64,000 bases of DNA from Rebecca billardiae RCC1528 (taxonomy: Eukaryota > Protista > Haptophyta): the NCBI GenBank assembly GCA_965240325.2, contig OZ251252.1:868001-932000 (forward strand). Direction: 5' to 3'. The notes under the pieces are model-generated. The model was not told the DNA's origin, did not search any database, and saw only the letters and a program-made list of their open reading frames with translations. Positions within the stretch are counted from its first letter, which is position 1, and the number at the start of each line of letters is the position of its first letter. The position numbers were made by a program, and so were the translations under genes. Positions 4,499-17,550 of this stretch are shown in pieces.

Positions 4499-4930
4499 GC
4501 TGGTTTTGATTTTATTGACGACGATGGCGGCCGCGCCCCGCGGCATCAAAATACAAAATGCGCGCCACCTTCGTCCTTCTGCCCCCGGTCGGCTTGGCTT
4601 GGAGTTTCAATATAATATGATGATGATGACGATGATGATGATGATGACATGATCTCCGCCTCCGGTCAGTTGATAGCTGATGCCCGATGCCGCAGTCCGG
4701 TGACGGTCGCCTGTATTCGTATGCGATGCGTCTATGCGACGCGGGGCCAGGCAGCACCCCGGCCCCGCGAGTGTTCAGCGCGCCGGCGTCAGTCGTAGTT
4801 GAAGTTAGCCCGGTAAACAGTAAACAGTTATAGGGCCATGCCCATGGCCCGGGCACTTGGCTGTGGCAGCGCGGGCGGCCGTGTTGAGCGGCGGAGTGCT
4901 CCGCCCGCCAGCTGCACCCAGCCTCGGGGC

Positions 4931-6034
4931 TCAGCAGCACGTCCAGTACCCGTTGCGCCAGATCGTCGGCGGCCACAGCCGCATCGGCGGCGGTCGGCGC
5001 ACGAGCGTGCCGCCGGCGCCGCGCGCGCGCCGCCGCGCGCCCAGCCAGAACTCTTGCAGCGTGACGCACGGGTTGGCGTGTGCAAACGGAAAGGCGCACT
5101 CGGGCAGCTCGCGCAGGTAGTCGAGCGCGTCGCGGCGGGTGAGCTCGTACGTCGTGGTGTTCACCAGCGACATCGCCGCGTGCGACGCCGCGAGCAGCGC
5201 GAGCAGCACCACCGCCGGCCACAGCAGCAGCAGGTACAGATACAGCGGCCCGTTGAGGATTACCCATTTCTCAAACGGCGGCTCGGGCTCCGCGTTCGCC
5301 GCCATCGTGCCGTGGACGAGCGGGAGCGTGAGCGCGCACGCGAGGGTCTGCGCGAGGAGGAGCGCGAGGAAGAGCGCGTGGTTGCCCTCGCCCACGCAGT
5401 TCGCCACGAGGAAGCAGTGGTGGTCGTACCGCCACACGCAGCGCCGGCAGTAGGCGCAGTGGCGCGCGCGCAGCGGCCTGGGCTGGTGGTCGCAGCGCGC
5501 GCACTCGCCGGCGAGGTAGAGCGAGGCGGCGGCGTGCTCGGGCGCGCTCGCGTCGTCGCCGTCGGACGAGACGAGCAGCGCGCTCCCCTCCTCCTCCTCC
5601 GCGTGCGGCCCCGGCGCGGCGCGCGGCGGCGCGGCGGCGCCGGGCGCGGCCGCGCCGCGCTCGGCCGAGAGCAGCGCGCGGTCGGCGAGCGCCTCGAGCT
5701 GGCGGAGGACGTCGTCGCGCTCGACGTAGCCCGGGTTGCTGCGCACCACCCGCGCGTACAGCAAGCACGCGCCGATGCTCGCGTACGCGTACGCGAGCGC
5801 GTGCGCCATGCTCGCGCGCTGCAGCGCGCCGTGGCCGAGCAGCAGCGCGCCGAGCGCGAGGTGCAGCGCGGCGTGCGCGCCGATGGCGAGCTCGGGGCGC
5901 GGGCCCTTGGGCGTCCATGACCACGAGCCGCCGATCTGCGCCTCCAGCGTCGCGGCGTCGGCGTCGTCCTCCGCGTCGTCGGCGGCGGCCGCATCGCCGC
6001 CACCGCCCGCTGCTTTTGTCGGGCGCGGCGCCAT
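4931..6034 (-). CDS. DHHC-type S-palmitoyltransferase
   Basis: CxxC..RPLRARHCAYCRRCVWRYDHHCFLVANCVGEGN cysteine-rich DHHC domain, four hydrophobic segments and an NTTTYE (TTxE) motif. Confidence 0.95.
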   Translation of the reverse strand: MAPRPTKAAGGGGDAAAADDAEDDADAATLEAQIGGSWSWTPKGPRPELAIGAHAALHLALGALLLGHGALQRASMAHALAYAYASIGACLLYARVVRSNPGYVERDDVLRQLEALADRALLSAERGAAAPGAAAPPRAAPGPHAEEEEGSALLVSSDGDDASAPEHAAASLYLAGECARCDHQPRPLRARHCAYCRRCVWRYDHHCFLVANCVGEGNHALFLALLLAQTLACALTLPLVHGTMAANAEPEPPFEKWVILNGPLYLYLLLLWPAVVLLALLAASHAAMSLVNTTTYELTRRDALDYLRELPECAFPFAHANPCVTLQEFWLGARRRARGAGGTLVRRPPPMRLWPPTIWRNGYWTCC

Positions 6035-6761
6035 CGTGGGAGCCGCCGCGTTCACCTATGGATAATCACCTTGCGGCTTGCAAACCAAGCCCCCCAAAAC
6101 GGGATGGCGAGCACTGGGCGACGCGAGGGCCCGCCTGCGCAGCGCTCCCAAGGCCGCATGCGGGCGTGACAGCCGTGCGCGGGCACTTTGTGGGGGCTAG
6201 AAGACCCGTAGGCAGCAATCGTGCCGCCTCGCCGACGCCCTCGCCGCCCTCTCCGCGCGCAGAGACCTGCCGGATGGCAAGCGCAGTTCTGGAGAAGGCC
6301 TGTCCGACGAGCGTGATGGGCACGCGTGCGCCCCAGGGACATTCAAAGGTCGGCTTTTTCGCTTCTGCGAGATGGGCATGGGTGTACTCAATATCACTGC
6401 TTCGCCGGCAGCCATGCCGACATCGATCAGACCGCACACACACGCTCAACAGCTGGCAGGCCAGCAACCGGTTGAAATGGCGGCGCGCGTGATCACAAGG
6501 CTGTCGGCGAGGAGACCGCAGTGCGAGCCAAAGGAGGGCGCGCAAGACATGCATCTCGGTCGTGAGGCGTGCATGAGCCGCGAGCACGGGCACGACGTGC
6601 ACGGCAAAGCCCGTCATGCGCCTCGACGCGCACGCGCCGCGGCGGACGACCGAGGAGGGCGCGCGCAGGCTGGCCTTCTTGGCGGCGGCTGTCCGGGAGT
6701 GCCCGCGCACGCGCAACGCGTATTCAAAGAGCTCCCGGAAGGCATCGACTCCTAAGGGACG

Positions 6762-7812
6762 GAGGCCGCTCGAGCGACTTCGTGTCTGGCGAGGCAGATC
6801 GCGCCAGTGCGTGGCGAGGCAGACGCTCGCCTGCCTCGCCGCTTGGCGAGGCAGCTAAGCTAGTAAAGCCGCGGCCGAACTTTACGAAAGCCAAATGTCT
6901 GCCGGTGCGCCGCCCGTCTTTTGCGCACGGTGACAAGGGCGCGCGAGGGCGCTTCCTCACGATCCCGAAGAGCGCTGTGCGCGGCGTCGCGTTGGCGGCG
7001 GCAGCGGCGCTGGGGTGTATCTTGCCCATTCTGCGTGGCGGCGCGCTCTCATGACGCCTCGGCCGCCGCCACGCCATGCGCGACCGGGCGTGTCGCCTTC
7101 TTGACGGGCAGTGCACACGCCCTTGCAAGCGCACAGCCGTGAAGAGCCGAGAGCGTCCGTCGCGAGCACGCCGCCCACGCGGGATGCGTTGCCAGGGCTA
7201 TTCGTATGACACTGGGTGCTCGCGCTCTGGCATGTGCGAGCCAGGATGACCATGGGTAGCTATGATGAGCACTGCTAACCTGCATTTCAGCCGATGACAT
7301 CCTCTCGTTCAGTGATCTTGACTGCTCTGAACGCATGGCGAACTCGGCGAAGCGCATGCGCAAGGTGGCTTCGGTGACGACATAACGCATCCCACGTGGG
7401 CGGCGTGCTCGCGACGGACGCTCTCGGCTCTTCACGGCTGTGCGCTTGCAAGGGCGTGTGCACTGCCCGTCAAGAAGGCGACACGCCCGGTCGCGCATGG
7501 CGTGGCGGCGGCCGAGGCGTCATGAGAGCGCGCCGCCACGCAGAATGGGCAAGATACACCCCAGCGCCGCTGCCGCCGCCAACGCGACGCCGCGCGCAGC
7601 GCTCTTCGGGATCGTGAGGAAGCGCCCTCGCGCGCCCTTGTCACCGTGCGCAAAAGACGGGCGGCGCACCGGCAGACATTTGGCTTTCGTAAAGTTCGGC
7701 CGCGGCTTTACTAGCTTAGCTGCCTCGCCAAGCGGCGAGGCAGGCGAGCGTCTGCCTCGCCACGCACTGGCGCGATCTGCCTCGCCAGACACGAAGTCGC
7801 TCGAGTGGCCTC
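6762..7812. mobile_element. Foldback (long-TIR) element A, 1051 bp, 5-bp TSD GGACG
   Basis: Near-perfect 429-bp inverted arms (6762-7190 / 7384-7812) around a 193-bp spacer. Termini are GAG...CTC. GGACG at 6757-6761 and 7813-7817. Confidence 0.9.
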
Positions 7813-7817
7813 GGACG

Positions 7818-8872
7818 GAGTGCACTCGAGCGAAAACGTGCGCGGCGAGGCCACTTTCGCACGGGGTGGCGAGGCCACTTCGAGGGTGGCCTCGCCGCGG
7901 TGGCGAGGCCACCCTTCGTCGTCTTGCTACGGCAGAACTTTTAGAAACGAAAATGCCGCCTCCGCGCGCCCCATCTTCGTGCACGGCGGCGAGGGGCGCG
8001 CGGGGGCGCCGGCTCGCGATCCGAAGGGCAGTAGCTCGCGACCTCGCGTGGGCTGCGGCAGCGGCGCTGTGGCATGCCAGTCGCCTTCCGCGCGTCTGTG
8101 TGCGATCGCGCGCTCCCGCTCGTCGCCACGCCGCGCGCGACCGTTCACGCCACGGCCTTCCACGCTGCTTGCAGACCCTTGCGAGCACACGGCCGCGGAG
8201 AGCCCAGAGCGCCCGCCGCGAGCGCGACGCACTGCTAGGATGTGATGTACTGATAGCCACGCTGACATGCGCTTGCGTTCCCCTGAGTGCAGCCCACATC
8301 CAGACCATTTCCTACCGCTGCACGAGAGTCCATGGTCTATCACACGACCATCGACCTGTGCACATTACTGCAGCTGCCCATGATCATCACACGTATCTCG
8401 TGGGCTAAAGCGTGCCTCGTAGGGCCAGTGCACTACCAGTACAACACATCCCAGCAGTGCGTCGCGCTCGCGGCGGGCGCTCTGGGCTCTCCGCGGCCGT
8501 GTGCTCGCAAGGGTCTGCAAGGCAGCGTGGAAGGCCGTGGCGTGAACGGTCGCGCGCGGCGTGGCGACGAGCGGGAGCGCGCGATCGCACACAGACGCGC
8601 GGAAGGCGACTGGCATGCCACAGCGCCGCTGCCGCAGCCCACGCGAGGTCGCGAGCTACTGCCCTTCGGATCGCGAGTCGGCGCCCCCGCGCGCCCCTCG
8701 CCGCCGTGCACGAAGATGGGGCGCGCGGAGGCGGCATTTTCGTTTCTAAAAGTTCTGCCGTAGCAAGACGACGAAGGGTGGCCTCGCCACCGCGGCGAGG
8801 CCACCCTCGAAGTGGCCTCGCCACCCCGTGCGAAAGTGGCCTCGCCGCGCACGTTTTCGCTCGAGTGCACTC
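7818..8872. mobile_element. Foldback (long-TIR) element B, 1055 bp, 5-bp TSD GGACG
   Basis: Near-perfect ~440-bp inverted arms (7818-8256 / 8433-8872, one 1-bp indel) around a ~176-bp spacer. Termini are GAG...CTC. GGACG at 7813-7817 and 8873-8877. Confidence 0.9.
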
Positions 8873-9141
8873 GGACGGTGCCTTTCGCCGCGCGACGAGG
8901 TGTTTTGGGGGGCTTGGTTTGCAAGCTTGCGGGCGCGCTCCATCTTCCGTCGGCGCTCCACGCGGGTTGCTGAAAAAATGCGCGGAGTGGAGCGCCGAAT
9001 TTGTTATTTGATGACGGCGCGGACAAAATCATGATCATCGCGGACGCATGATGACTCGTCAGACGCCGTTGCGGCAGCGCGCCGCGCAGGCTCGACGTAC
9101 CGCGCCGCCACGGCGCCAGACGGTGTGCAGGCTCGGCCGGC

Positions 9142-10680
9142 TCAAGCGGGCAGCTGCAGGTAGCCGTTGGCAGCGGCGGCGCCACCGCCAGCGCCCACCG
9201 AGCCCGCCCGCGCGCCGGCTGCCACCGAGCGCGCGGAGCGCCCGCCCGCGGCACGCGCCGAGTGCGCCGCGCCGCCCGCCCGCGGCTTGGCGAGCGCGCT
9301 CGCGCGCGCCGCGTCCGCGTCGGCCGGCGCGGCTCCCGCGTCGAAGCGCACCACGCCCGCGCCCTCGCCGTCGCGCTGCGCGAGCACCGCGAGCGCGTCC
9401 GCGCGCGCCACCCTCGAGAACACGTCGAGGCGCAAGTCATTCCGGTCAACACCAAACGGCATTTCTATTTCGGCCGCGACTTCATTCAGCCCGAGCAGGG
9501 CGAGCGCGACGAGCGCGCTGGCGAGCGGCGTGCCCCAGCCGAAGTGGTGGGCGAGGGTGAGCGGCAGCGTCGAGAGGAAGAGGAGCAGGAACAGGTGCAG
9601 CAGCTGCACGTACGGGGACGGCAGCGGCGTCGTCCGGATTTTGTCCGCGCCCATCCACCCGCTTACCAGCGCGCTCACGTGACCGTCCAACAGCCGGAGC
9701 GCGTCGCCCGAGAGCCGCCCGGCGCGCACCGCGTGGTGGACGCGCCGGCTGAGCCACTGCGCGGCCACCGGCACCGCGCGCTCGTGCGCCAGCAGCAGCG
9801 ACCACTCGCCGGCTGTCGCGAAGCGCCGCGCGCACGCCTCCGCCTCGAGCGCGCGCGCGCGCGCGGCGCGGGCGCGCGCCGACGGCGCGGCCGAGGGGCG
9901 CGCCGCCGGCTTGGGCGACGGCGTGGGCTCGTCGGAGGGGCGCGCGCCCGCGCACGCCGCGCCGCCGCCGCCCGACGCCGCCGCCCACGCGCGCTGCCCC
10001 GCGCCCGCCCACGCGGCGCCGCCGGGCGCGGCGGGCGCGCACGCGCCCACCGCCCCGTCCGCCGCGACTGCAGCTGCCGGCGCGTGCAGTCCATCCGCAA
10101 CCGCCGCCTGCAAGTCGTGCGCCGCCGCCGAGTAGAGGAGAAGGGCGAGGCGGCGGAGGTCCTCGCGCTCGTTGGCGGCGTCGCGGTCGTCGCCGTCGTG
10201 GTACGCCGAGACGATGCGCACGATCTCGCGCAGCGAGAGCACCATCTGCCCCACCAGAGACCGCCCCTCCCTGTGCGTGCGCGCGGCGCGCGCGCGGCGC
10301 GCGCGCGGCGCGCAAGAGCGCGCGCGCGCGCGCGAGCGGGGGGTCGTCAGCGGCACGCGGCGCGGCACGGGGCCGCACGCCGCGCGAGGCCGCGCGCACC
10401 AGTACCGCCCGTACGCGTGGCTCGAGCGGAAGACCAGCATGAACGAGAGCGGGACCATCAGCAGCGTGTGCGCCTTGTCTGGCAGCACCGCGCCGCTCGG
10501 CCGTGCGGGCGCGCCCGGGCCGAAGGCCGTGAGGTCGACGCGCGCGGCGTGCAGCGCGGCGGCGACGAGGCCGAGCAGCGCGGTGGTGAGCACCTCGGGC
10601 AGCACGCGCGGGATCACCGAGCCGCGCAGCTGGAAGATCAGCGCCAGCCAGTGCCGGTCGCGCATCGCTTGGGCGGGCAT
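9142..10680 (-). CDS. Bestrophin family anion channel, bacterial/UPF0187 (YneE)-type; exons 10680-10400, 10270-9142
   Basis: GSVIPRV, LSFMLVFRSSHAYGRYW|EGR (restored by the 129-bp GT-AG intron 10271-10399), ADKIRTTPLPSPY, EIEMPFGVDRNDL. Confidence 0.92.
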   Translation of the reverse strand: MPAQAMRDRHWLALIFQLRGSVIPRVLPEVLTTALLGLVAAALHAARVDLTAFGPGAPARPSGAVLPDKAHTLLMVPLSFMLVFRSSHAYGRYWCARPRAACGPVPRRVPLTTPRSRARARSCAPRARRARAARTHREGRSLVGQMVLSLREIVRIVSAYHDGDDRDAANEREDLRRLALLLYSAAAHDLQAAVADGLHAPAAAVAADGAVGACAPAAPGGAAWAGAGQRAWAAASGGGGAACAGARPSDEPTPSPKPAARPSAAPSARARAARARALEAEACARRFATAGEWSLLLAHERAVPVAAQWLSRRVHHAVRAGRLSGDALRLLDGHVSALVSGWMGADKIRTTPLPSPYVQLLHLFLLLFLSTLPLTLAHHFGWGTPLASALVALALLGLNEVAAEIEMPFGVDRNDLRLDVFSRVARADALAVLAQRDGEGAGVVRFDAGAAPADADAARASALAKPRAGGAAHSARAAGGRSARSVAAGARAGSVGAGGGAAAANGYLQLPA

Positions 10681-13323
10681 GGTGAGGGCGCGACACGATG
10701 GCCGCCTGATCAAAAGCGAGCACCAATGTTATATCGAAAGTGCTCCGCCATCGGCCCTACTGTCGCATCGGCGCCCAGTCGGCGAGTTCGGACGACGACG
10801 TTTTGTGGACGACGGTGGGGCGAGGACGACGGGCGCTGGCGCGCCGCGAGGCGGCCGCAGCCCTCATCCCGGCCTCGCAGGCGGACGGCTTAACGAATCT
10901 TCCGGCGGCGCTACCATCGGCGACGGCTTCACATGGGCGGTGACAGTTGTCAGTTGGCGGGCAGTCTAAATCTCGCCTGCCTGAGCTGTGGCCTGTGTGC
11001 GTCTCTTAAATTCTTAGTAAACTGTATCCGGATTGAACGTAGTAACGACGTGGCAGTAACGTCACACGTGCTGACGTCCCTCCGCTGACGTCAGGCTGGT
11101 GCGTTCCGGACTCAGCGCGCAGATGACACTTCACGTGACGGATATCAGTTCTAGTATTGACGAGACTGCGGGTTCTGCTATGCGCTATACTAGTAGTACA
11201 ACGATGGACGACAGCACAGGCAGGTCGCATGCCGGCGCAGGTCTCGCCTCGGATTTGTCAGCAGATTCACTCAGTCAGTCGGCAAGTCGGCGTTGGTGGC
11301 AGCTAGAGCTCCGCGCCTGCACCGCGCGATCGAAGGAGCTAGCTTTTAGTAAATTATTATTTACATTAAGCGCGTTTTGAGCCGCAGCAGCGAGATCCAC
11401 CTGGCGCTGAGCAGCAGTTACGCATAGAGGGGTCGACGACTTCATATTATTTAGGTTTGGCATATTATTACATGCGGATTCGATCTGCCGCGGCGCAGTC
11501 TGACCCGAGGACACCCAGCCGAGGCCAGCACTGGCCACTCAATGACTCAAACTAAGTACGACGCACAAGCCACTCGGCTGATGACCGTACCGTACTGCAG
11601 TAGTGATGCCGCACTATATTCTTGTAGTGCTGTAGTAGTAGTATACCGCCCTTTAGGTATGTCGTACCGCAGTCATCACACGTACTACATTACGACGACA
11701 CCGCGCACATCGAGATCGACATCGCATCGTCAGCACAGCATTCGTCAATTCGTGATTCGTTCGCGCACACACCGTGTCCGTCAGTCAGCCAGCACCGCAC
11801 GTACTATCTCATTCAGAGACGAACCACTCAGAGGAGCAGCTAGCGAGCTCGTCGTCGGAGGTGTTTAGTGCAGTGTTGGTGTCTGCCTGTGTGCTCATCT
11901 GGCAGGCCTGTCTGTATCGATTCGGGCGCATCGACCGGCTTAGCAGTAGCGAGTCGGAGTAGCGAACGTGTCGATGGATTCTTCAGAGTTCAAGTAGGCA
12001 GACTGGCCACCCGAGCTCACACTCCTCGCAGCGTCAAAGGCCAGCGACGGCTGAAAGCAGTGCAGATTCGCCCGAGTGACGATTCGGTGCGCGGCTCGCG
12101 GCTACGCGGCCAGCGCCATCTTTGACACGGCTAGGTCAAGTTTACTCGACTAGCCGGGCTTATGAAGGTCAAGGTTGGCAACGTCAGTTCAGAGTGTAAC
12201 TGACTGACGGGGCATGTGGCATCCGTGCAACGGTCACAGACCACGGCTACACACTTAATACTGCTAGTGTTGCGGTGGCGGGCCACTCAGCGCGCCGCAT
12301 GCGGCATGGGCGGCGCCGGCGCACCAATCACCTATGCGCTGCTCGACAGGCGAGCGTCTTGCATGCCGCGGCACGTGCGGAGAGGCGGCTAGGTATGCGC
12401 GCGCAAATAATGCCGTCTGCCCGTCGACGCCCCCGTCTGCTCCGTGCTCGCCAGCGTGACTCTGCGACGCCGTTCGGCGTTGTCGCTCGGCGCACGTTGC
12501 ATGCACGGTTTGTGCGCACGCACTGCCCGTCCGACGATGCTAAGCTGGCGATCGGTGATCCTAATGAGATACGCTACTGCTCTTCCTTCCGACCTGCACG
12601 GCCACGTGCACAGCAGTGCCAAGGGCACAGTGTGAGTGTCAGCACCGGCTAGCAGACTTGGCGCTGCCAGACTGTACAGCCTGTAGGCGAGGGCGGAGGG
12701 CAGTTCGTTGGTGATACCCGACTTTCGAGGCTCGGCATAAGGCTTCTTACCCGGCTCGAAAACTGAACGACGACACTAATGCGGGTGAGCACAGTATTCA
12801 CTCATTGGACTAGATATGTGGTGGATCTTCCCATATCGTACCCGCGATCACATTTAAAGTCGTATCACTGTAGTCCGGAGGGTGTCTGATTGGTTGCTTA
12901 AGGTGATGAAGAGGTATTGGGAATGGGAACCAATGCCATACACTATTATGAATGATTCGAAGCTCGTGGAAACCCTCACGCGCGTGGATCATGTTTGTGG
13001 TTCGAGCCAATCAGCGTCCGAGCACAGAGTGGTCTGCACTCAAACGCGCACTCAGAAACCTAACCAAAATGACGGATATCAGACCCATTTCATTTGGCAA
13101 AACGCAACTTGGGTATCGCCGTCTGTAAGCTGGGTATCGACATTAGTAAGGTCAATGAATCTGAATCCGACTCGTTGAACCTGACGAGAATCCTCGCGCC
13201 CCGCCCCACCTGTACTGTGCCTGTTCTCAACGTCGTCACAAAAGGATCCCGCCACGCAAACACGTCGTGCGCCCCCCCGCCCCCCGCCCGATTCCTCCCC
13301 CACGACGCTCTCGGCTCCGAACC

Positions 13324-14286
13324 ATGCCCGATGCCGAACGATCCGACGCGCACGTGCAGCACCGCTGGCGGCCGCGCCCGGCGCAGCGGCTGCTCCTCGA
13401 GTCCGTCTTCAGCGTGTCCAACATGCCCAACCGGCTGACGGTCGATGCGCTCGCGAAGTCGCTCAACGTCCACCCGCGCCAAGCCAGGATCTGGTTCCAG
13501 AACAAGCGGCAGCGCCTGCGCAAGCGGCACGGCGCGGACGCCTTGCCGAACACGACGCTCGAGGGCCCGATCTCCGCCATGCTCCCCGCGCTCCTCGCGC
13601 CGCAGGCCCTGGCCGCCGTCGCGCGGCCGGACGCGTCTCGCTCAGACGCACGCGTGGACGTGTCCGCGACTCCGATCGCCGCGCCGAGTGCGCCGTCGAC
13701 TGCGCGCGCGAGCATGTACACGCCGCCACTGGTCGTGCCGGGCCGGGTGATGGACCAGTCCGACGCCACGGTGCTGCCCGCGCCCGCCGACGCGCTCGCG
13801 TGGCGAGCGGCGCAGCAGCAGCAGATCCCCACCTTCCACGCGCTGCTCGCGCGCGAGCTCGCTTCGGCGGTGAACAGCGGCCTCGTCCAGCTGGCGTGCC
13901 CCTCTCGCTCTGTGCCCGAGCACGCCGTCCAAGAGCGCGCCCTGAAGGCTGAGGACGCGCAGCGCGTCTTTCCGGTCAGCCCGCACGACGTCACCAAGGC
14001 CATGTTCGGCGCCGACCGGCACCACCACCACCAGCTGCTCCTGCAGCAGCAGCAGCAGCAGCCGCCGTACACCGCGGTGCCGTTCGACCCGTTGCCGCCA
14101 CCCCTGCTCAACACGCTCTCGACGGCGCCGAGCGCATCTGCCGGCGATGTGGAGCGCCACACGAGCTCCACGCACGCCGCATGGCAGCGCCGTGTGTGCC
14201 TACCCAGCGACGCCGCGGCGCCCGCGTTCACGAGCGACGACTTTTACGACGCGCTCCTCAACGACATCATCGCACGCGGCGTCTGA
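13324..14286 (+). CDS. Homeodomain transcription factor
   Basis: RWRPRPAQRLLLESVF...PNRLTVDALAKSLNVHPRQARIWFQNKRQR homeodomain near the N-terminus. Q/P-rich body and acidic-hydrophobic C-terminal tail. Confidence 0.9.
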   Translation: MPDAERSDAHVQHRWRPRPAQRLLLESVFSVSNMPNRLTVDALAKSLNVHPRQARIWFQNKRQRLRKRHGADALPNTTLEGPISAMLPALLAPQALAAVARPDASRSDARVDVSATPIAAPSAPSTARASMYTPPLVVPGRVMDQSDATVLPAPADALAWRAAQQQQIPTFHALLARELASAVNSGLVQLACPSRSVPEHAVQERALKAEDAQRVFPVSPHDVTKAMFGADRHHHHQLLLQQQQQQPPYTAVPFDPLPPPLLNTLSTAPSASAGDVERHTSSTHAAWQRRVCLPSDAAAPAFTSDDFYDALLNDIIARGV

Positions 14287-14730
14287 CGTGGACTCGGACT
14301 TGCCGCCTGCAGCCAAGTGGCGCGCACCGTGATGCCATGATGCGCGTGCGCGCTGGCGCCGCCGCAGCCGCGAGGCCGGCCCAGCTCCTGCAGCCCTTTG
14401 GTGGCGCGTCGATCTCCCCCGCCGCCCGGCGATATGCATGAGTCTCCGAATGGCCGCGGCGCGAACGGCGAAGCCGAGCGCGCGACATCAGATCGCGAGC
14501 AAACGGACTACGCGGAGACTGTACCGGGCCGAACACTGATGTGTGCGCATCGTCGTGTCCGAGGACTCGTCGTCATCGCACCGCCAGCGCGACCCCGGCG
14601 TCGGACACTCCCGCGCCAGCATCGTCATTATTATATATTATTAAAATTATTGGAAACAATTCTTAATTTTTAAAAGTGTGGTTATGATGATATTAATAAT
14701 ATTATTATTAATTAAATATATACGGCCACT

Positions 14731-14929
<199 letters not shown>

Positions 14930-15220
14930 CGACGTACTGTCGTAGTGGTATGTCAACGGGCACGGGCGTCAAAGTCAGCAAGCTGAGTAGCAGCAGATAT
15001 CGAGCAGCAGAGACATGATGCTGCAAATAACACCATCGTCATCAGGATCAGCGCTCCTCGCCGTCGTCCCCCCCCCCCCCCCCCCCCCCTCGTAGTCGCC
15101 CATATATCGTCACTCCATCGCCGAGCGGAAGCTCGACGCACCGTCTGGCGGCGTCGACGACGCGCGCGCGCCACCGCGGTGGTCGCGGTGGCCACGCGTC
15201 GTCCGAGCCCGCGGTCTGTC

Positions 15221-15259
<39 letters not shown>

Positions 15260-15494
15260 TATGCTGCTGCTATACATACTGCGACGACGACAGCTCGTCG
15301 CTGTCCACCTGACGTTTGACAGACGCGCTTGCTCATCAGCCGCCGCCACGCTCGCCGGGCGGATCCGACGCGACAACGCAGTCGCGATCGCGCGGCATCA
15401 GGCGGCCAGCAGCCGCGCCGGGCGTGTCCTCGCGCGTCGTCAGCCTCGCCCGTATGGACGCCCCGCGGCCGGCTCTGCACCAACCGCCCCCAAG

Positions 15495-17550
15495 TCAGCC
15501 TGCCTCCTCGAGGGCGAGCCTCGGCCCAGCGTGGGCTGCCGCGGGCGCGGCGCGCTCGGCGCACGCCGGCGCGGCGGCCGGCTCCGGCGGCGGCGGCGCC
15601 TCCGCCGCCGACGGCACCTGCTGCGCGGCCCAACGCGCCTCCGCGGGCGGCTCGGGCGCGGGCGTGCCCACCCCGCTCTCGCGGCCCTCGACAGGCGCGC
15701 CCACCACCTGTGCGGCCACCGGCGCCGAGTCCGCCGCCGGCGCGCCGGCAGGCCAGCCGCCGGCGCCGCCGCGCGCGGCGCTCGCCGCCACCGGCGCGGC
15801 CGCGGGCGCGCCCAAGGGCACGGCTGCGTGCGGCCGCGCGGGGGGCGCAGGCGCGGGCGCACCCCGCGCGGGCAGGGCGTCGGCGCGCGCGCGCGCGAGC
15901 GGCGCGCCGGCGTGCGTGGCCGCACCATAGTGCGCCTCGCGCAGCGCGTGTTGGCCCGGCACCATCCCACCGGTGAGCAGGCCCTCCCCGCGCGCCGCGC
16001 CGCGCCGCCACTCGCCCGCGTACACGGCGCCTGCGGCGGTGCGTAGGCTGCCGACGCCGTGCCGCGCGCCGCGGCGCCACTCGCCGTCGTACTGCGCGCC
16101 GCACGCGTAGGTCTGGCTGCCGAAGCCGTGCCGCGCGCCGCGCCGCCACGAGCCGTCGTACAGCACGGGGCGCAGCCGCAGAAGTCTCCCCGAAAGTTCC
16201 ACCGCGTCGGCGCACGCGGCCGGCGGCTCGGCCGGCGGCGGCGGCGGCGGCGCGTGCGGCGCGTGCGCCGCCGCCAGCGCCGGCTCCGCCGAGCGCTGGC
16301 AGCACAGGGCGAGGCCCTCGCCGTCCCGCGCGCCGTGCGCCCACTGCCCGACGTACCGCTCCTCGCCCTCGCACGCGCACGCCGTGCTTGGCCCCGCGCG
16401 GCCGTCAACGGCGCCGGCGTCGTCGTCGCCAGCGTCGTCGGCGGCTGTGGCGGCGGCGGCGGCTGTGGCGGCGGCGGCGGCTGTGGCGGCGGCGGCGGCG
16501 GCGTTGGCGGTCGGGTCGGGGTCGGGCTGGGCGGCTGGGGCGGGCTCGGCGCGGGCGGTGGGTGAACGCAGCACCACCTGCGCTCCACGCCCGTGCCGCC
16601 GCCCGTGCCGCCAGCCGCCGACGTACAACTCCAGCTCGAGCTCGAGCTCGAGATCGAGATCGAGATCGAGATCGAGATCGGCATCCAGATTGCGATCTCG
16701 CGCGGCGCCGCGCGGCGGCTCAGCGCCGCCGCGCTGCGCGTGCGCTGCGGGAGATTGCAATCTCCCGCGGCGCACGCACAGCTCCACGCCGAGGCCGTGC
16801 GCGAGCAGAGCGGGTCGCGCCGGCTGCGGCCCCGCCCACACCGCGCCATCCACCGCGGGCGCCCCTGCGCGGGAGATTGCAATCTCTGCGGCGAGCGCTG
16901 CGCCCGCCGCGTCGGCGGCATGCGGCGCGGCGGCGAGTGGTGCTGCTGCGGCGTCCGCCGCCTTGAGGCCACCGCCGTACCACGCGCCCACGAGATCGCA
17001 ATCTCCGGCCCGGCCGGGGGCGGGTGCACCCGCCGCCCCAGCCGGCGCGTCCCCGTCGTCGTCGGACTCGCGCTGGCCCTCGCCCGCGCCGCCGCCGTCC
17101 GCGCCCGGCGCGCGCGGCGGCGGCGGCGGCGGCGACGGCGCGCGCCATTGCGGCGCCGCCGCGCCGCCGCTCGCGCGCAGCACGGCCGCCCGCTGACGGT
17201 GCGTCGCGGCCGGGGCGACCGGCGGCGGCGGCGGCGGCGGCAGCGTGTCCGCGGGCACGGCGCCGTGGGCGGGCCCGCCCTCCGCGCCGCCCCCTCCGCG
17301 CGCGTCGGCCGCGGCCGCGAGCGCCGCGCCGCCGCCGCCGCCCGAGCGCGCCGCGGCCGCGGCGGCCGCGCCGCCCGCCGCCGCGCGCGCCAGGCCAAGC
17401 AGCCGCTGGCTGAGTGAGCTCACGGCGGCGCCCGCGGCGCTCTCGGCCACGCTGTCGGCCAGCTGCGCCGCGCCGGCGACCGCCGCGTCCGACGCGCCGC
17501 CGAGGCTGCCCAGCGCGCCGCGCGCGCCGGCGGGCGGCCGCGGCGAGAGA

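Follow-up and report, generated by a model that had tools for sequence, protein, structure and literature searches.

Two diverged foldback transposons, probably stacked by successive insertion at one GGACG site inside another transposon

In the 64,000-nt stretch of Rebecca billardiae DNA analysed here (the window), two foldback elements, A and B, lie side by side in the order GGACG-A-GGACG-B-GGACG. How did two different elements come to share one 5-bp sequence, and what kind of enzyme would move them? The best explanation overall, which we regard as highly probable, is a stacked insertion of two foldbacks of diverged subfamilies at one GGACG within a carrier transposon.

Organization of the foldback elements and their carrier

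The locus consists of the following features, some of which recur in X1, an independent public run that was examined as contigs.

6070..6076, no strand: left 7-bp target duplication of the carrier, CTTGCGG, identical to the heptamer at 8926-8932
6077..6756, no strand: left part of the carrier, with a 24-nt terminal inverted repeat (6077-6100) that matches 8902-8925 perfectly
6757..6761, no strand: GGACG copy 1, target duplication on the left side of A; GGACG is single in the X1 contigs of the empty site
6762..7812, no strand: foldback element A, arms 6762-7190 and 7384-7812, spacer 7191-7383; left junction and spacer found independently in X1
7813..7817, no strand: GGACG copy 2, the A/B junction
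7818..8872, no strand: foldback element B, arms 7818-8256 and 8433-8872, spacer 8257-8432
8873..8877, no strand: GGACG copy 3, target duplication right of B
8878..8925, no strand: right part of the carrier, with the 24-nt terminal inverted repeat 8902-8925
8926..8932, no strand: right 7-bp target duplication of the carrier, CTTGCGG, the same heptamer as at 6070..6076

The first-pass annotation had described A and B as near-perfect palindromes of ~1.05 kb, separated and flanked by GGACG at 6757, 7813 and 8873, and all of these coordinates proved exact. The arms of A are 429 nt long and 99.3% complementary (3 mismatches) around a spacer of 193 nt, and its tips are GAGGCCGCTCGAGCGA and GAGGCCACTCGAGCGA. 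The arms of B (~440 nt) are 98.9% alike with one 1-nt indel, enclose a spacer of 176 nt and carry GAGTGCACTCGAGCGA at both tips. Exactly three copies of GGACG border the elements, one on either side of the pair and one between A and B; the background frequency of GGACG in the window is 0.0019 per position, which gives a chance of ~3e-6 for two further copies at two fixed junctions. As expected of a transposable-element dimer, the A/B junction consists of one GGACG identical to the outer two (McGurk and Barbash 2018, PMC5932611). The duplication length of 5 bp is read from one locus and from the symmetry of the element ends; another G follows the last GGACG, and 6 bp with asymmetric ends may be compatible at this locus.

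A and B are foldback DNA transposons built on long terminal inverted repeats (TIRs), non-coding and non-autonomous: their arms are 99% alike, GGACG flanks them, and an empty site with one GGACG is present in two X1 contigs. No Pfam family was matched at an E value of 0.01 or better by 8 ORFs of A, B and the carrier, and Rfam gave only sub-threshold matches, with none above threshold for A. An ORF in the B arm has zero homologues among 5.8 billion proteins. A conserved small protein across the A and B spacers was considered and rejected, as protein-level conservation is absent between the ORFs of A and B.

That A and B are nested in another transposon, as first proposed, is borne out by the 24-nt inverted ends of the carrier (tip CTTGCAAACC), its 7-bp direct repeat (CTTGCGG, background 1.1e-4 per position in the window) and contigs that break at or just inside its ends. 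X1 contigs enter unlike sequence exactly at 6075 and 8925, and same-strain Logan contigs (L022 and L023) end at 6103, 27 nt inside the carrier. The carrier (6077-8925), which without A, B and two of the GGACG copies measures ~733 bp, is thus mobile and repeated in the genome. The three transposition layers (carrier, then A, then B) occupy 2.85 kb and lie 42 nt upstream of the start codon of a DHHC gene.

Kinship of A and B and the order of insertion

The first-pass annotation held that A and B are homologous along their arms without being duplicates, and this is upheld throughout: the arms are ~65% identical across their full length, both stop at a homologous position, and the 16-nt tip GAG...CTCGAGCGA is common to A and B. 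Each arm contains four GGCGAGGC boxes at like offsets and in like orientations (+26, +51, +71 in reverse and +83 in A; +26, +50, +71 in reverse and +84 in B). The boxes read GGCGAGGCAG in A (6788, 6813, 6833 in reverse, 6845) and GGCGAGGCCAC in B (7844, 7868, 7889 in reverse, 7902), with a mirror set in each right arm; the tail of the box differs consistently between the elements (AG in A, CAC in B), and a head-to-head box palindrome is kept in both. Box density is 7.6 per kb within A and B versus 0.39 per kb elsewhere in the window. Judged by these sequences, A and B are two long-diverged subfamilies of one family, the hallmarks of which are GAG...CTC ends, the conserved tip, four subterminal boxes per arm and the 5-bp target duplication. 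Identity is 99% within each element and 65% between the two, a contrast that bears on how the identity of foldback arms is kept up over the long term.

The spacers, which had been thought unrelated, show no similarity in forward orientation. When the A spacer is aligned with the reverse complement of the B spacer, the global score lies 3.6-4.6 SD above shuffles; the local alignment reaches a z of only 2.3, a level also attained by 42 of 1000 dinucleotide shuffles, and the best common block is GATGAYCATGGGYAGCT. This similarity weakly contradicts the earlier view and hints that B may be homologous to A over its full length, but with the centre inverted.

Homology over the whole arms, together with the same size and layout, is also what would result if one ancestral foldback and its duplication had been copied in tandem in place, by unequal exchange or replication slippage, and had then diverged. 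Such an origin is very improbable: A and B are ~35% different, yet the GGACG copies and the 24-nt carrier ends are perfect and the arms of each element are 99% alike. The spacers, if related at all, are oppositely oriented, and X1 has A and the empty site, with no B.

X1 also bears on the order of insertion. An empty (single GGACG) carrier site was looked for and found in two variants, one contig being identical to the window flanks and the other having a 2-bp deletion nearby; of the words sampled from unique DNA nearby, X1 contains a fraction of only 0.06, and the empty sites may belong to paralogous copies of the carrier instead of to alleles of the locus. One X1 contig runs from the left flank into A and provides the flank-to-A junction; an A arm, the right flank and the A spacer (with 5 substitutions and a 3-nt insertion) are also present. 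Apart from a 67-nt related fragment, B was not found in the X1 contigs, which show presence better than absence, and the A-to-right-flank junction was not seen there either. The empty sites, the flank-to-A junction and the A spacer, seen with no B, support the view that A and then B truly inserted here, each duplicating 5 bp of the target.

Assembly easily goes wrong at palindromes, and the X1 contigs give no independent support for B or the A-GGACG-B junction, as would be the case if the locus were an artefact assembled from palindromic reads. We nonetheless give this reading hardly any weight, because the left junction, A arm, spacer, empty site and right flank are all found in the independent run, and because two different foldbacks with clean, identical 5-bp borders are unlike the chimeric products of palindromic reads.

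Proposed history and the search for a transposase

In the favoured history of stacked insertion, the ~733-bp carrier with its 7-bp duplication would already have been in place when A inserted into a GGACG within it. B would then have entered the right-hand GGACG copy, directly against the tip of A, generating the third GGACG. A cut-and-paste transposase acting in trans probably binds the tip and the boxes and would cut the target with a 5-nt stagger; it may be drawn to this spot by a strongly preferred target or by protein already on the end of A. The first-pass annotation had proposed same-site targeting as a habit of the subfamilies. For this locus the proposal holds, with two independent insertions (~35% divergence; A without B in X1), and a site preference as a rule goes further than a single locus reaches.

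Alternatively, GGACG might be no target duplication but the core at which a site-specific recombinase, of the tyrosine or serine type, crossed over and integrated A and B as circles, in the manner of Crypton or integron cassettes. The same five bases are present three times, with one copy at the empty site, and reciprocal recombination would leave precisely the order core-A-core-B-core. The long inverted ends, conserved tip and ordered subterminal boxes, however, are the layout of cut-and-paste elements; GGACG is absent within A and B, although a circle junction would require it; and no recombinase gene was found nearby. A recombinase core is accordingly improbable, if somewhat less so than tandem copying or misassembly.

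A long copy with a transposase ORF was sought, and neither a transposase nor an autonomous copy was found in the 64,000-nt window or in the sequence collections searched. What the lower-GC stretches of the window contain is ordinary: a homeobox-like ORF, a ubiquitin-like repeat and a RING-type ORF. A dispersed GAGATTGCAATCTC palindrome was rejected as a mini-relative, its flanks being without a 5-bp duplication. A strict pattern of tip plus first box had zero matches in metagenome or viral contigs. A looser pattern of tip plus two boxes matched 16 metagenome and 5 prokaryote-genome loci, none of which aligns to A, B or the carrier; they are therefore chance hits and were rejected as relatives. 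In exact-product look-ups of public assemblies, the DHHC gene was the only product found: ORFs spanning the A-B junction, carrier ORFs, and, with the starts tried, the neighbouring methyltransferase and a downstream 523-aa ORF are not on record. A literature search found nothing specific on haptophyte foldbacks or pavlovophyte transposable-element families.

Comparison with known systems

The non-coding nature of A and B, their near-identical long inverted arms, short centre and motifs repeated near the tips recall the Drosophila foldbacks FB and Galileo. Satellites are absent from the arms of A and B, and the ends differ: Galileo, of the P superfamily, has CA ends and a 7-bp duplication and FB has a 9-bp duplication, in contrast to GAG and 5 bp here. 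P/Galileo-type foldbacks in general have 7-8-bp duplications and CA tips, a combination shared by neither A nor B; the 7-bp duplication of the carrier agrees with it and the carrier tip does not. Mutator-like elements, including Pack-MULEs, offer a likeness in their G-rich tips (GAG or GGG), their subterminal repeats, their numerous non-autonomous derivatives and their inverted ends, which run to hundreds of bases, and the 429-440-nt arms of A and B, which begin with GAG, conform to this pattern. The Mutator duplication, however, is 8-11 bp rather than 5 bp. For Sola3 the duplication is TTAA or 4 bp, and the earlier statement that a 5-bp GC-rich duplication is foreign to both Sola3 and Mutator agrees with what GGACG shows. 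Elements of the hAT superfamily have an 8-bp duplication and a YARNG tip; here the duplication is 5 bp and the tip begins with G instead of C or T.

Transib was described as the only eukaryotic DNA-transposon superfamily with a 5-bp duplication, and its targets are GC-rich, CGGCG being one example (Kapitonov and Jurka 2005, PMC1131882); GGACG agrees with this, at one site only. Transib ends, by contrast, consist of a 38-bp repeat in which a 23-bp spacer separates a CACAATG-like heptamer from an A-rich nonamer (PMC1131882), in place of which A and B have the tips GAGGCCRCTCGAGCGA and GAGTGCACTCGAGCGA (tip motif GAGNNCRCTCGAGCGA) on arms of 430-440 nt, with no linked RAG1-like gene in the window. 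A 5-bp duplication has also been reported for TDD-4 and TDD-5 of the Ginger2/Tdd group, the tips of which follow the TGTNR pattern of LTR elements as opposed to GAG (PMC2836005).

GAG ends together with a 5-bp duplication thus match none of the end and duplication rules that were checked, namely those of Transib, Tdd, Mutator, hAT, P/Galileo and Sola3. To this extent the view of A and B as an unclassified long-TIR family stands; it does not stretch to a new superfamily, no transposase having been found in the window or in the collections searched. There is roughly an even prospect that the family belongs to a known superfamily, as a branch whose transposase cuts with an unusual 5-nt stagger, most likely Mutator-like, or else Transib/RAG1-like or hAT-like. 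GAG tips, long inverted ends and subterminal repeats generally resemble those of MULEs, and the 5-bp GC-rich duplication is that of Transib (PMC1131882), but each candidate departs in one defining feature (the 8-11 bp of Mutator, the CACAATG tip of Transib, the 8 bp of hAT). More tentatively, and with a distinctly smaller likelihood, the GAG...CTC long-TIR elements of this very GC-rich alga may be moved by a transposase lineage that is undescribed as a eukaryotic superfamily and that would also integrate beside resident ends of the family, producing stacked foldback dimers. Because its GAG ends and 5-bp duplication fit no checked rule, the family is a good place to look, within a little-studied group of algae, for a transposase that is atypical or has not yet been described.

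The closest precedent for the arrangement itself is provided by P elements, two of which lie at one site in the singed-weak allele. Tandem P-element dimers hold a target duplication at their junction and arise by double insertion at strong target sites (McGurk and Barbash 2018, PMC5932611). Double insertion at one site is therefore known behaviour, and the array building first suggested for A and B comes down to a dimer of two elements, of a kind already documented (PMC5932611). As at the present locus, cut-and-paste elements in P-element dimers stand side by side, and the junction is one target duplication identical to the outer two. P-element dimers are, however, copies of one element with an 8-bp duplication, whereas A and B are 35%-diverged foldback subfamilies with a 5-bp duplication at a site inside another transposon; because A and B are clearly different elements, the locus provides a clean natural example of two insertions at a single target.

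Structure of A and B and other repeats in the window

The foldback elements A and B, each composed of long inverted arms around a spacer, are about 1.05 kb long and are stacked at the pentamer GGACG. The first-pass annotation had described the arrangement GGACG-A-GGACG-B-GGACG, and this layout was confirmed by re-deriving coordinates, arms and spacers from the sequence.

Features of the stacked elements
6757-6761, 7813-7817 and 8873-8877: GGACG copies that flank and separate A and B
6762-7812: element A; arms 6762-7190 and 7384-7812 (429 nt, three mismatches), spacer 193 nt
7818-8872: element B; arms 7818-8256 and 8433-8872 (~440 nt, 98.9% alike, one 1-nt indel), spacer 176 nt

GGACG occurs at 0.0019 per position in the window, which is eukaryotic and has a GC content of 75%, and the probability that both fixed junctions would carry a further copy by chance is ~3e-6. 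There is no second copy of A or B elsewhere in the 64 kb window.

The arms of A and B align end to end with ~65% identity and few gaps and terminate at a homologous position; judged from these alignments, the elements are relatives and not duplicates, as had been claimed. Both carry a common 16-nt tip (GAGGCCRCTCGAGCGA in A, GAGTGCACTCGAGCGA in B), whose bases 1-10 are fully palindromic in B and nearly so in A. Every arm of both elements also carries four GGCGAGGC boxes, short motifs repeated near the tip.

Positions of boxes in the arms
A: +26, +51, +71 (reverse), +83
B: +26, +50, +71 (reverse), +84

The bases following the core switch consistently, being AG in every A box and CAC in every B box, and in each element boxes 3 and 4 face each other head to head as a palindrome, whose stem measures 10 bp (A) or 14 bp (B). 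Box density is 7.6 per kb within A and B vs 0.39 per kb outside. The arrangement of tip and boxes is that of transposase-binding ends, and the boxes may be bound by protein.

The spacers had been described as unrelated. This description holds in the same orientation, in which no similarity was found, but alignment of the A spacer with the reverse complement of the B spacer gives a weak signal (global score 3.6-4.6 SD above shuffles; local z 2.3, with 42 of 1000 dinucleotide shuffles scoring as well; best common block GATGAYCATGGGYAGCT). This is weak evidence that the spacer centres are homologous but flipped.

Within A, B and the surrounding transposon, none of eight ORFs has a Pfam match, Rfam matches are all sub-threshold, counterpart ORFs in the two elements are dissimilar at the protein level, and no homologues of the B-arm ORF were found.

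The window contains further repeats. An inverted-repeat element of ~840 bp has ends at 787-857 and 1557-1627 (71-74 nt, 98.6% alike) that start with ACGAATCAGGAGAGC, and no clear target duplication is seen there. The 14-nt palindrome GAGATTGCAATCTC is dispersed (16751, 16873, 19198, 19222, 19387), with variants, including some starting with CAG, at 16686, 16992, 19429, 35223, 35253 and 35283; three of the variants have a 30-nt spacing near 35.2 kb. This palindrome is often in frame as EIAIS within a long ORF, its flanks tend to lengthen it, and its copies have no surrounding 5-bp duplication. The ORF at 13267-14286 was rejected as a transposase candidate: it has a homeobox-like motif (WFQNKRQRLRKR), lies in a lower-GC stretch and is an ordinary gene.

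The carrier transposon and its neighbouring genes

The claim that A and B lie inside another transposon is borne out by the anatomy of the carrier (6077-8925). A perfect 24-nt inverted repeat (6077-6100 with 8902-8925) is flanked by CTTGCGG at 6070-6076 and 8926-8932, and contigs of X1, an independent public sequencing run, turn unlike the window exactly at 6075 and 8925. The carrier is thus itself a transposon; minus A and B, it comprises ~733 bp and is non-coding.

A DHHC-domain gene (Pfam DHHC) lies on the minus strand with its ATG at 6034, so that the left end of the carrier precedes this start codon by 42 nt, and the right end is ~216 nt beyond the stop of the next downstream ORF. The three nested elements therefore occupy almost the whole intergenic space. 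Two Logan contigs from two public runs (L022 and L023) match 4617-6103 with 100% identity and extend 27 nt into the left end of the carrier before they stop, as expected where a repeat begins in a k-mer graph. Besides the DHHC gene itself, these contigs include 69 nt of upstream and 314 nt of downstream sequence, and their other end is at an imperfect ATG/CAT microsatellite near 4600-4650. If they are transcripts rather than DNA assemblies, the 5' end of the DHHC gene would be inside the carrier.

Empty and A-only states in run X1

The first-pass annotation had proposed looking for empty sites that contain one GGACG, and comparison of X1 contigs with 5200-10200 of the window revealed two variants. 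One contig joins 6747 to 8873 via TCCTAAG; it contains just one GGACG and has a deletion of 2 bp close by. Another runs from 6718 to 6762 and then into the right flank, without that deletion. A third contig passes from the left flank (6733) through the A arm to 7190, and a fourth covers the A spacer, from which it differs by five substitutions and an insertion of 3 nt. B is uncovered in these contigs, which show presence better than absence, except for 67 nt (8087-8153) with four differences, followed by unlike sequence. The contig concerned has the highest depth seen (19.4), and the match is a relative from elsewhere, more abundant, in which the common segment is limited to these 67 nt.

Hence an empty site and an A-bearing carrier copy without B sequence both exist in X1. 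Together with the A-plus-B state of the window, these states support a true 5-bp duplication and insertion of A first and B second, the right junction of A and the A-B junction being absent from X1 contigs. Judged by the filled junction together with both versions of the empty site, the carrier appears to be present in several copies in X1, in which case the empty sites may be paralogues and not alleles; in either case, the pre-insertion state is shown. The share of sampled words present in X1 is 0.36 for 6000-9000 vs 0.06 for 10000-16000, which indicates either a low-coverage set, in which only repeated DNA was assembled, or a diverged strain. Relative to the window, one empty carrier copy in X1 lacks the 2 bp AC at 6748-6749 beside the insertion site, and X1 carrier copies show a deletion of 3 nt at 8893 and one substitution each at 6183 and 6655.

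Over the same span, arm identity is 99% within each element vs 65% between A and B, which reflects either young copies from a lineage that keeps a palindromic master or homogenised arms. Arms do drift after insertion: position 6978 is T in the left arm of A in the window, and C in the right arm and in the X1 contig. All three A-arm mismatches (6768, 6978, 7180) are transitions at CpG sites, a pattern absent from B-arm mismatches; the pattern in A would be consistent with deamination of cytosines in methylated DNA, three sites being too few for a conclusion.

Classification and parallels with known transposons

Mutator elements have GAG or GGG tips, long ends and 8-11 bp duplications, hAT elements duplicate 8 bp, P/Galileo elements duplicate 7-8 bp and have CA tips, and Sola3 targets TTAA. 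Set against these descriptions, A and B break one rule of each family. Among the DNA-transposon superfamilies of eukaryotes, Transib has been described as the sole one that duplicates 5 bp; it prefers GC-rich targets, and its ends combine a CACAATG heptamer with a nonamer (PMC1131882). The tips of A and B fail this heptamer/nonamer test. GingerRoot and Polinton have 6-bp duplications (PMC6839031). Compared by ends and duplication, the long-TIR family accordingly stays unclassified, as first proposed. Its signature is unusual and may be new. Scans for the pattern in contigs from metagenomes, viruses and prokaryotes yielded no genuine relative. Overall, the observation is confirmed and its first interpretation partly supported: two diverged foldback transposons were genuinely inserted one after the other at one 5-bp target inside another transposon.

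No transposase is present in the 64 kb window. From their anatomy, A and B would be non-autonomous, and a cut-and-paste transposase acting in trans would recognise the common tip and boxes and cut the target with a 5-nt stagger. Random integration of B at exactly the five bases duplicated by A is very unlikely. A transposase bound to an A tip might instead have captured adjoining DNA as its target at this one locus. Preferred-target double insertion, which could equally explain B beside A at this locus, has a documented parallel in P elements: in the majority of intact P dimers, the junction contains one 8-nt duplication, and such dimers arise by double insertion, at sites nearest the preferred target (PMC5932611). 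The dimer architecture is a known phenomenon.
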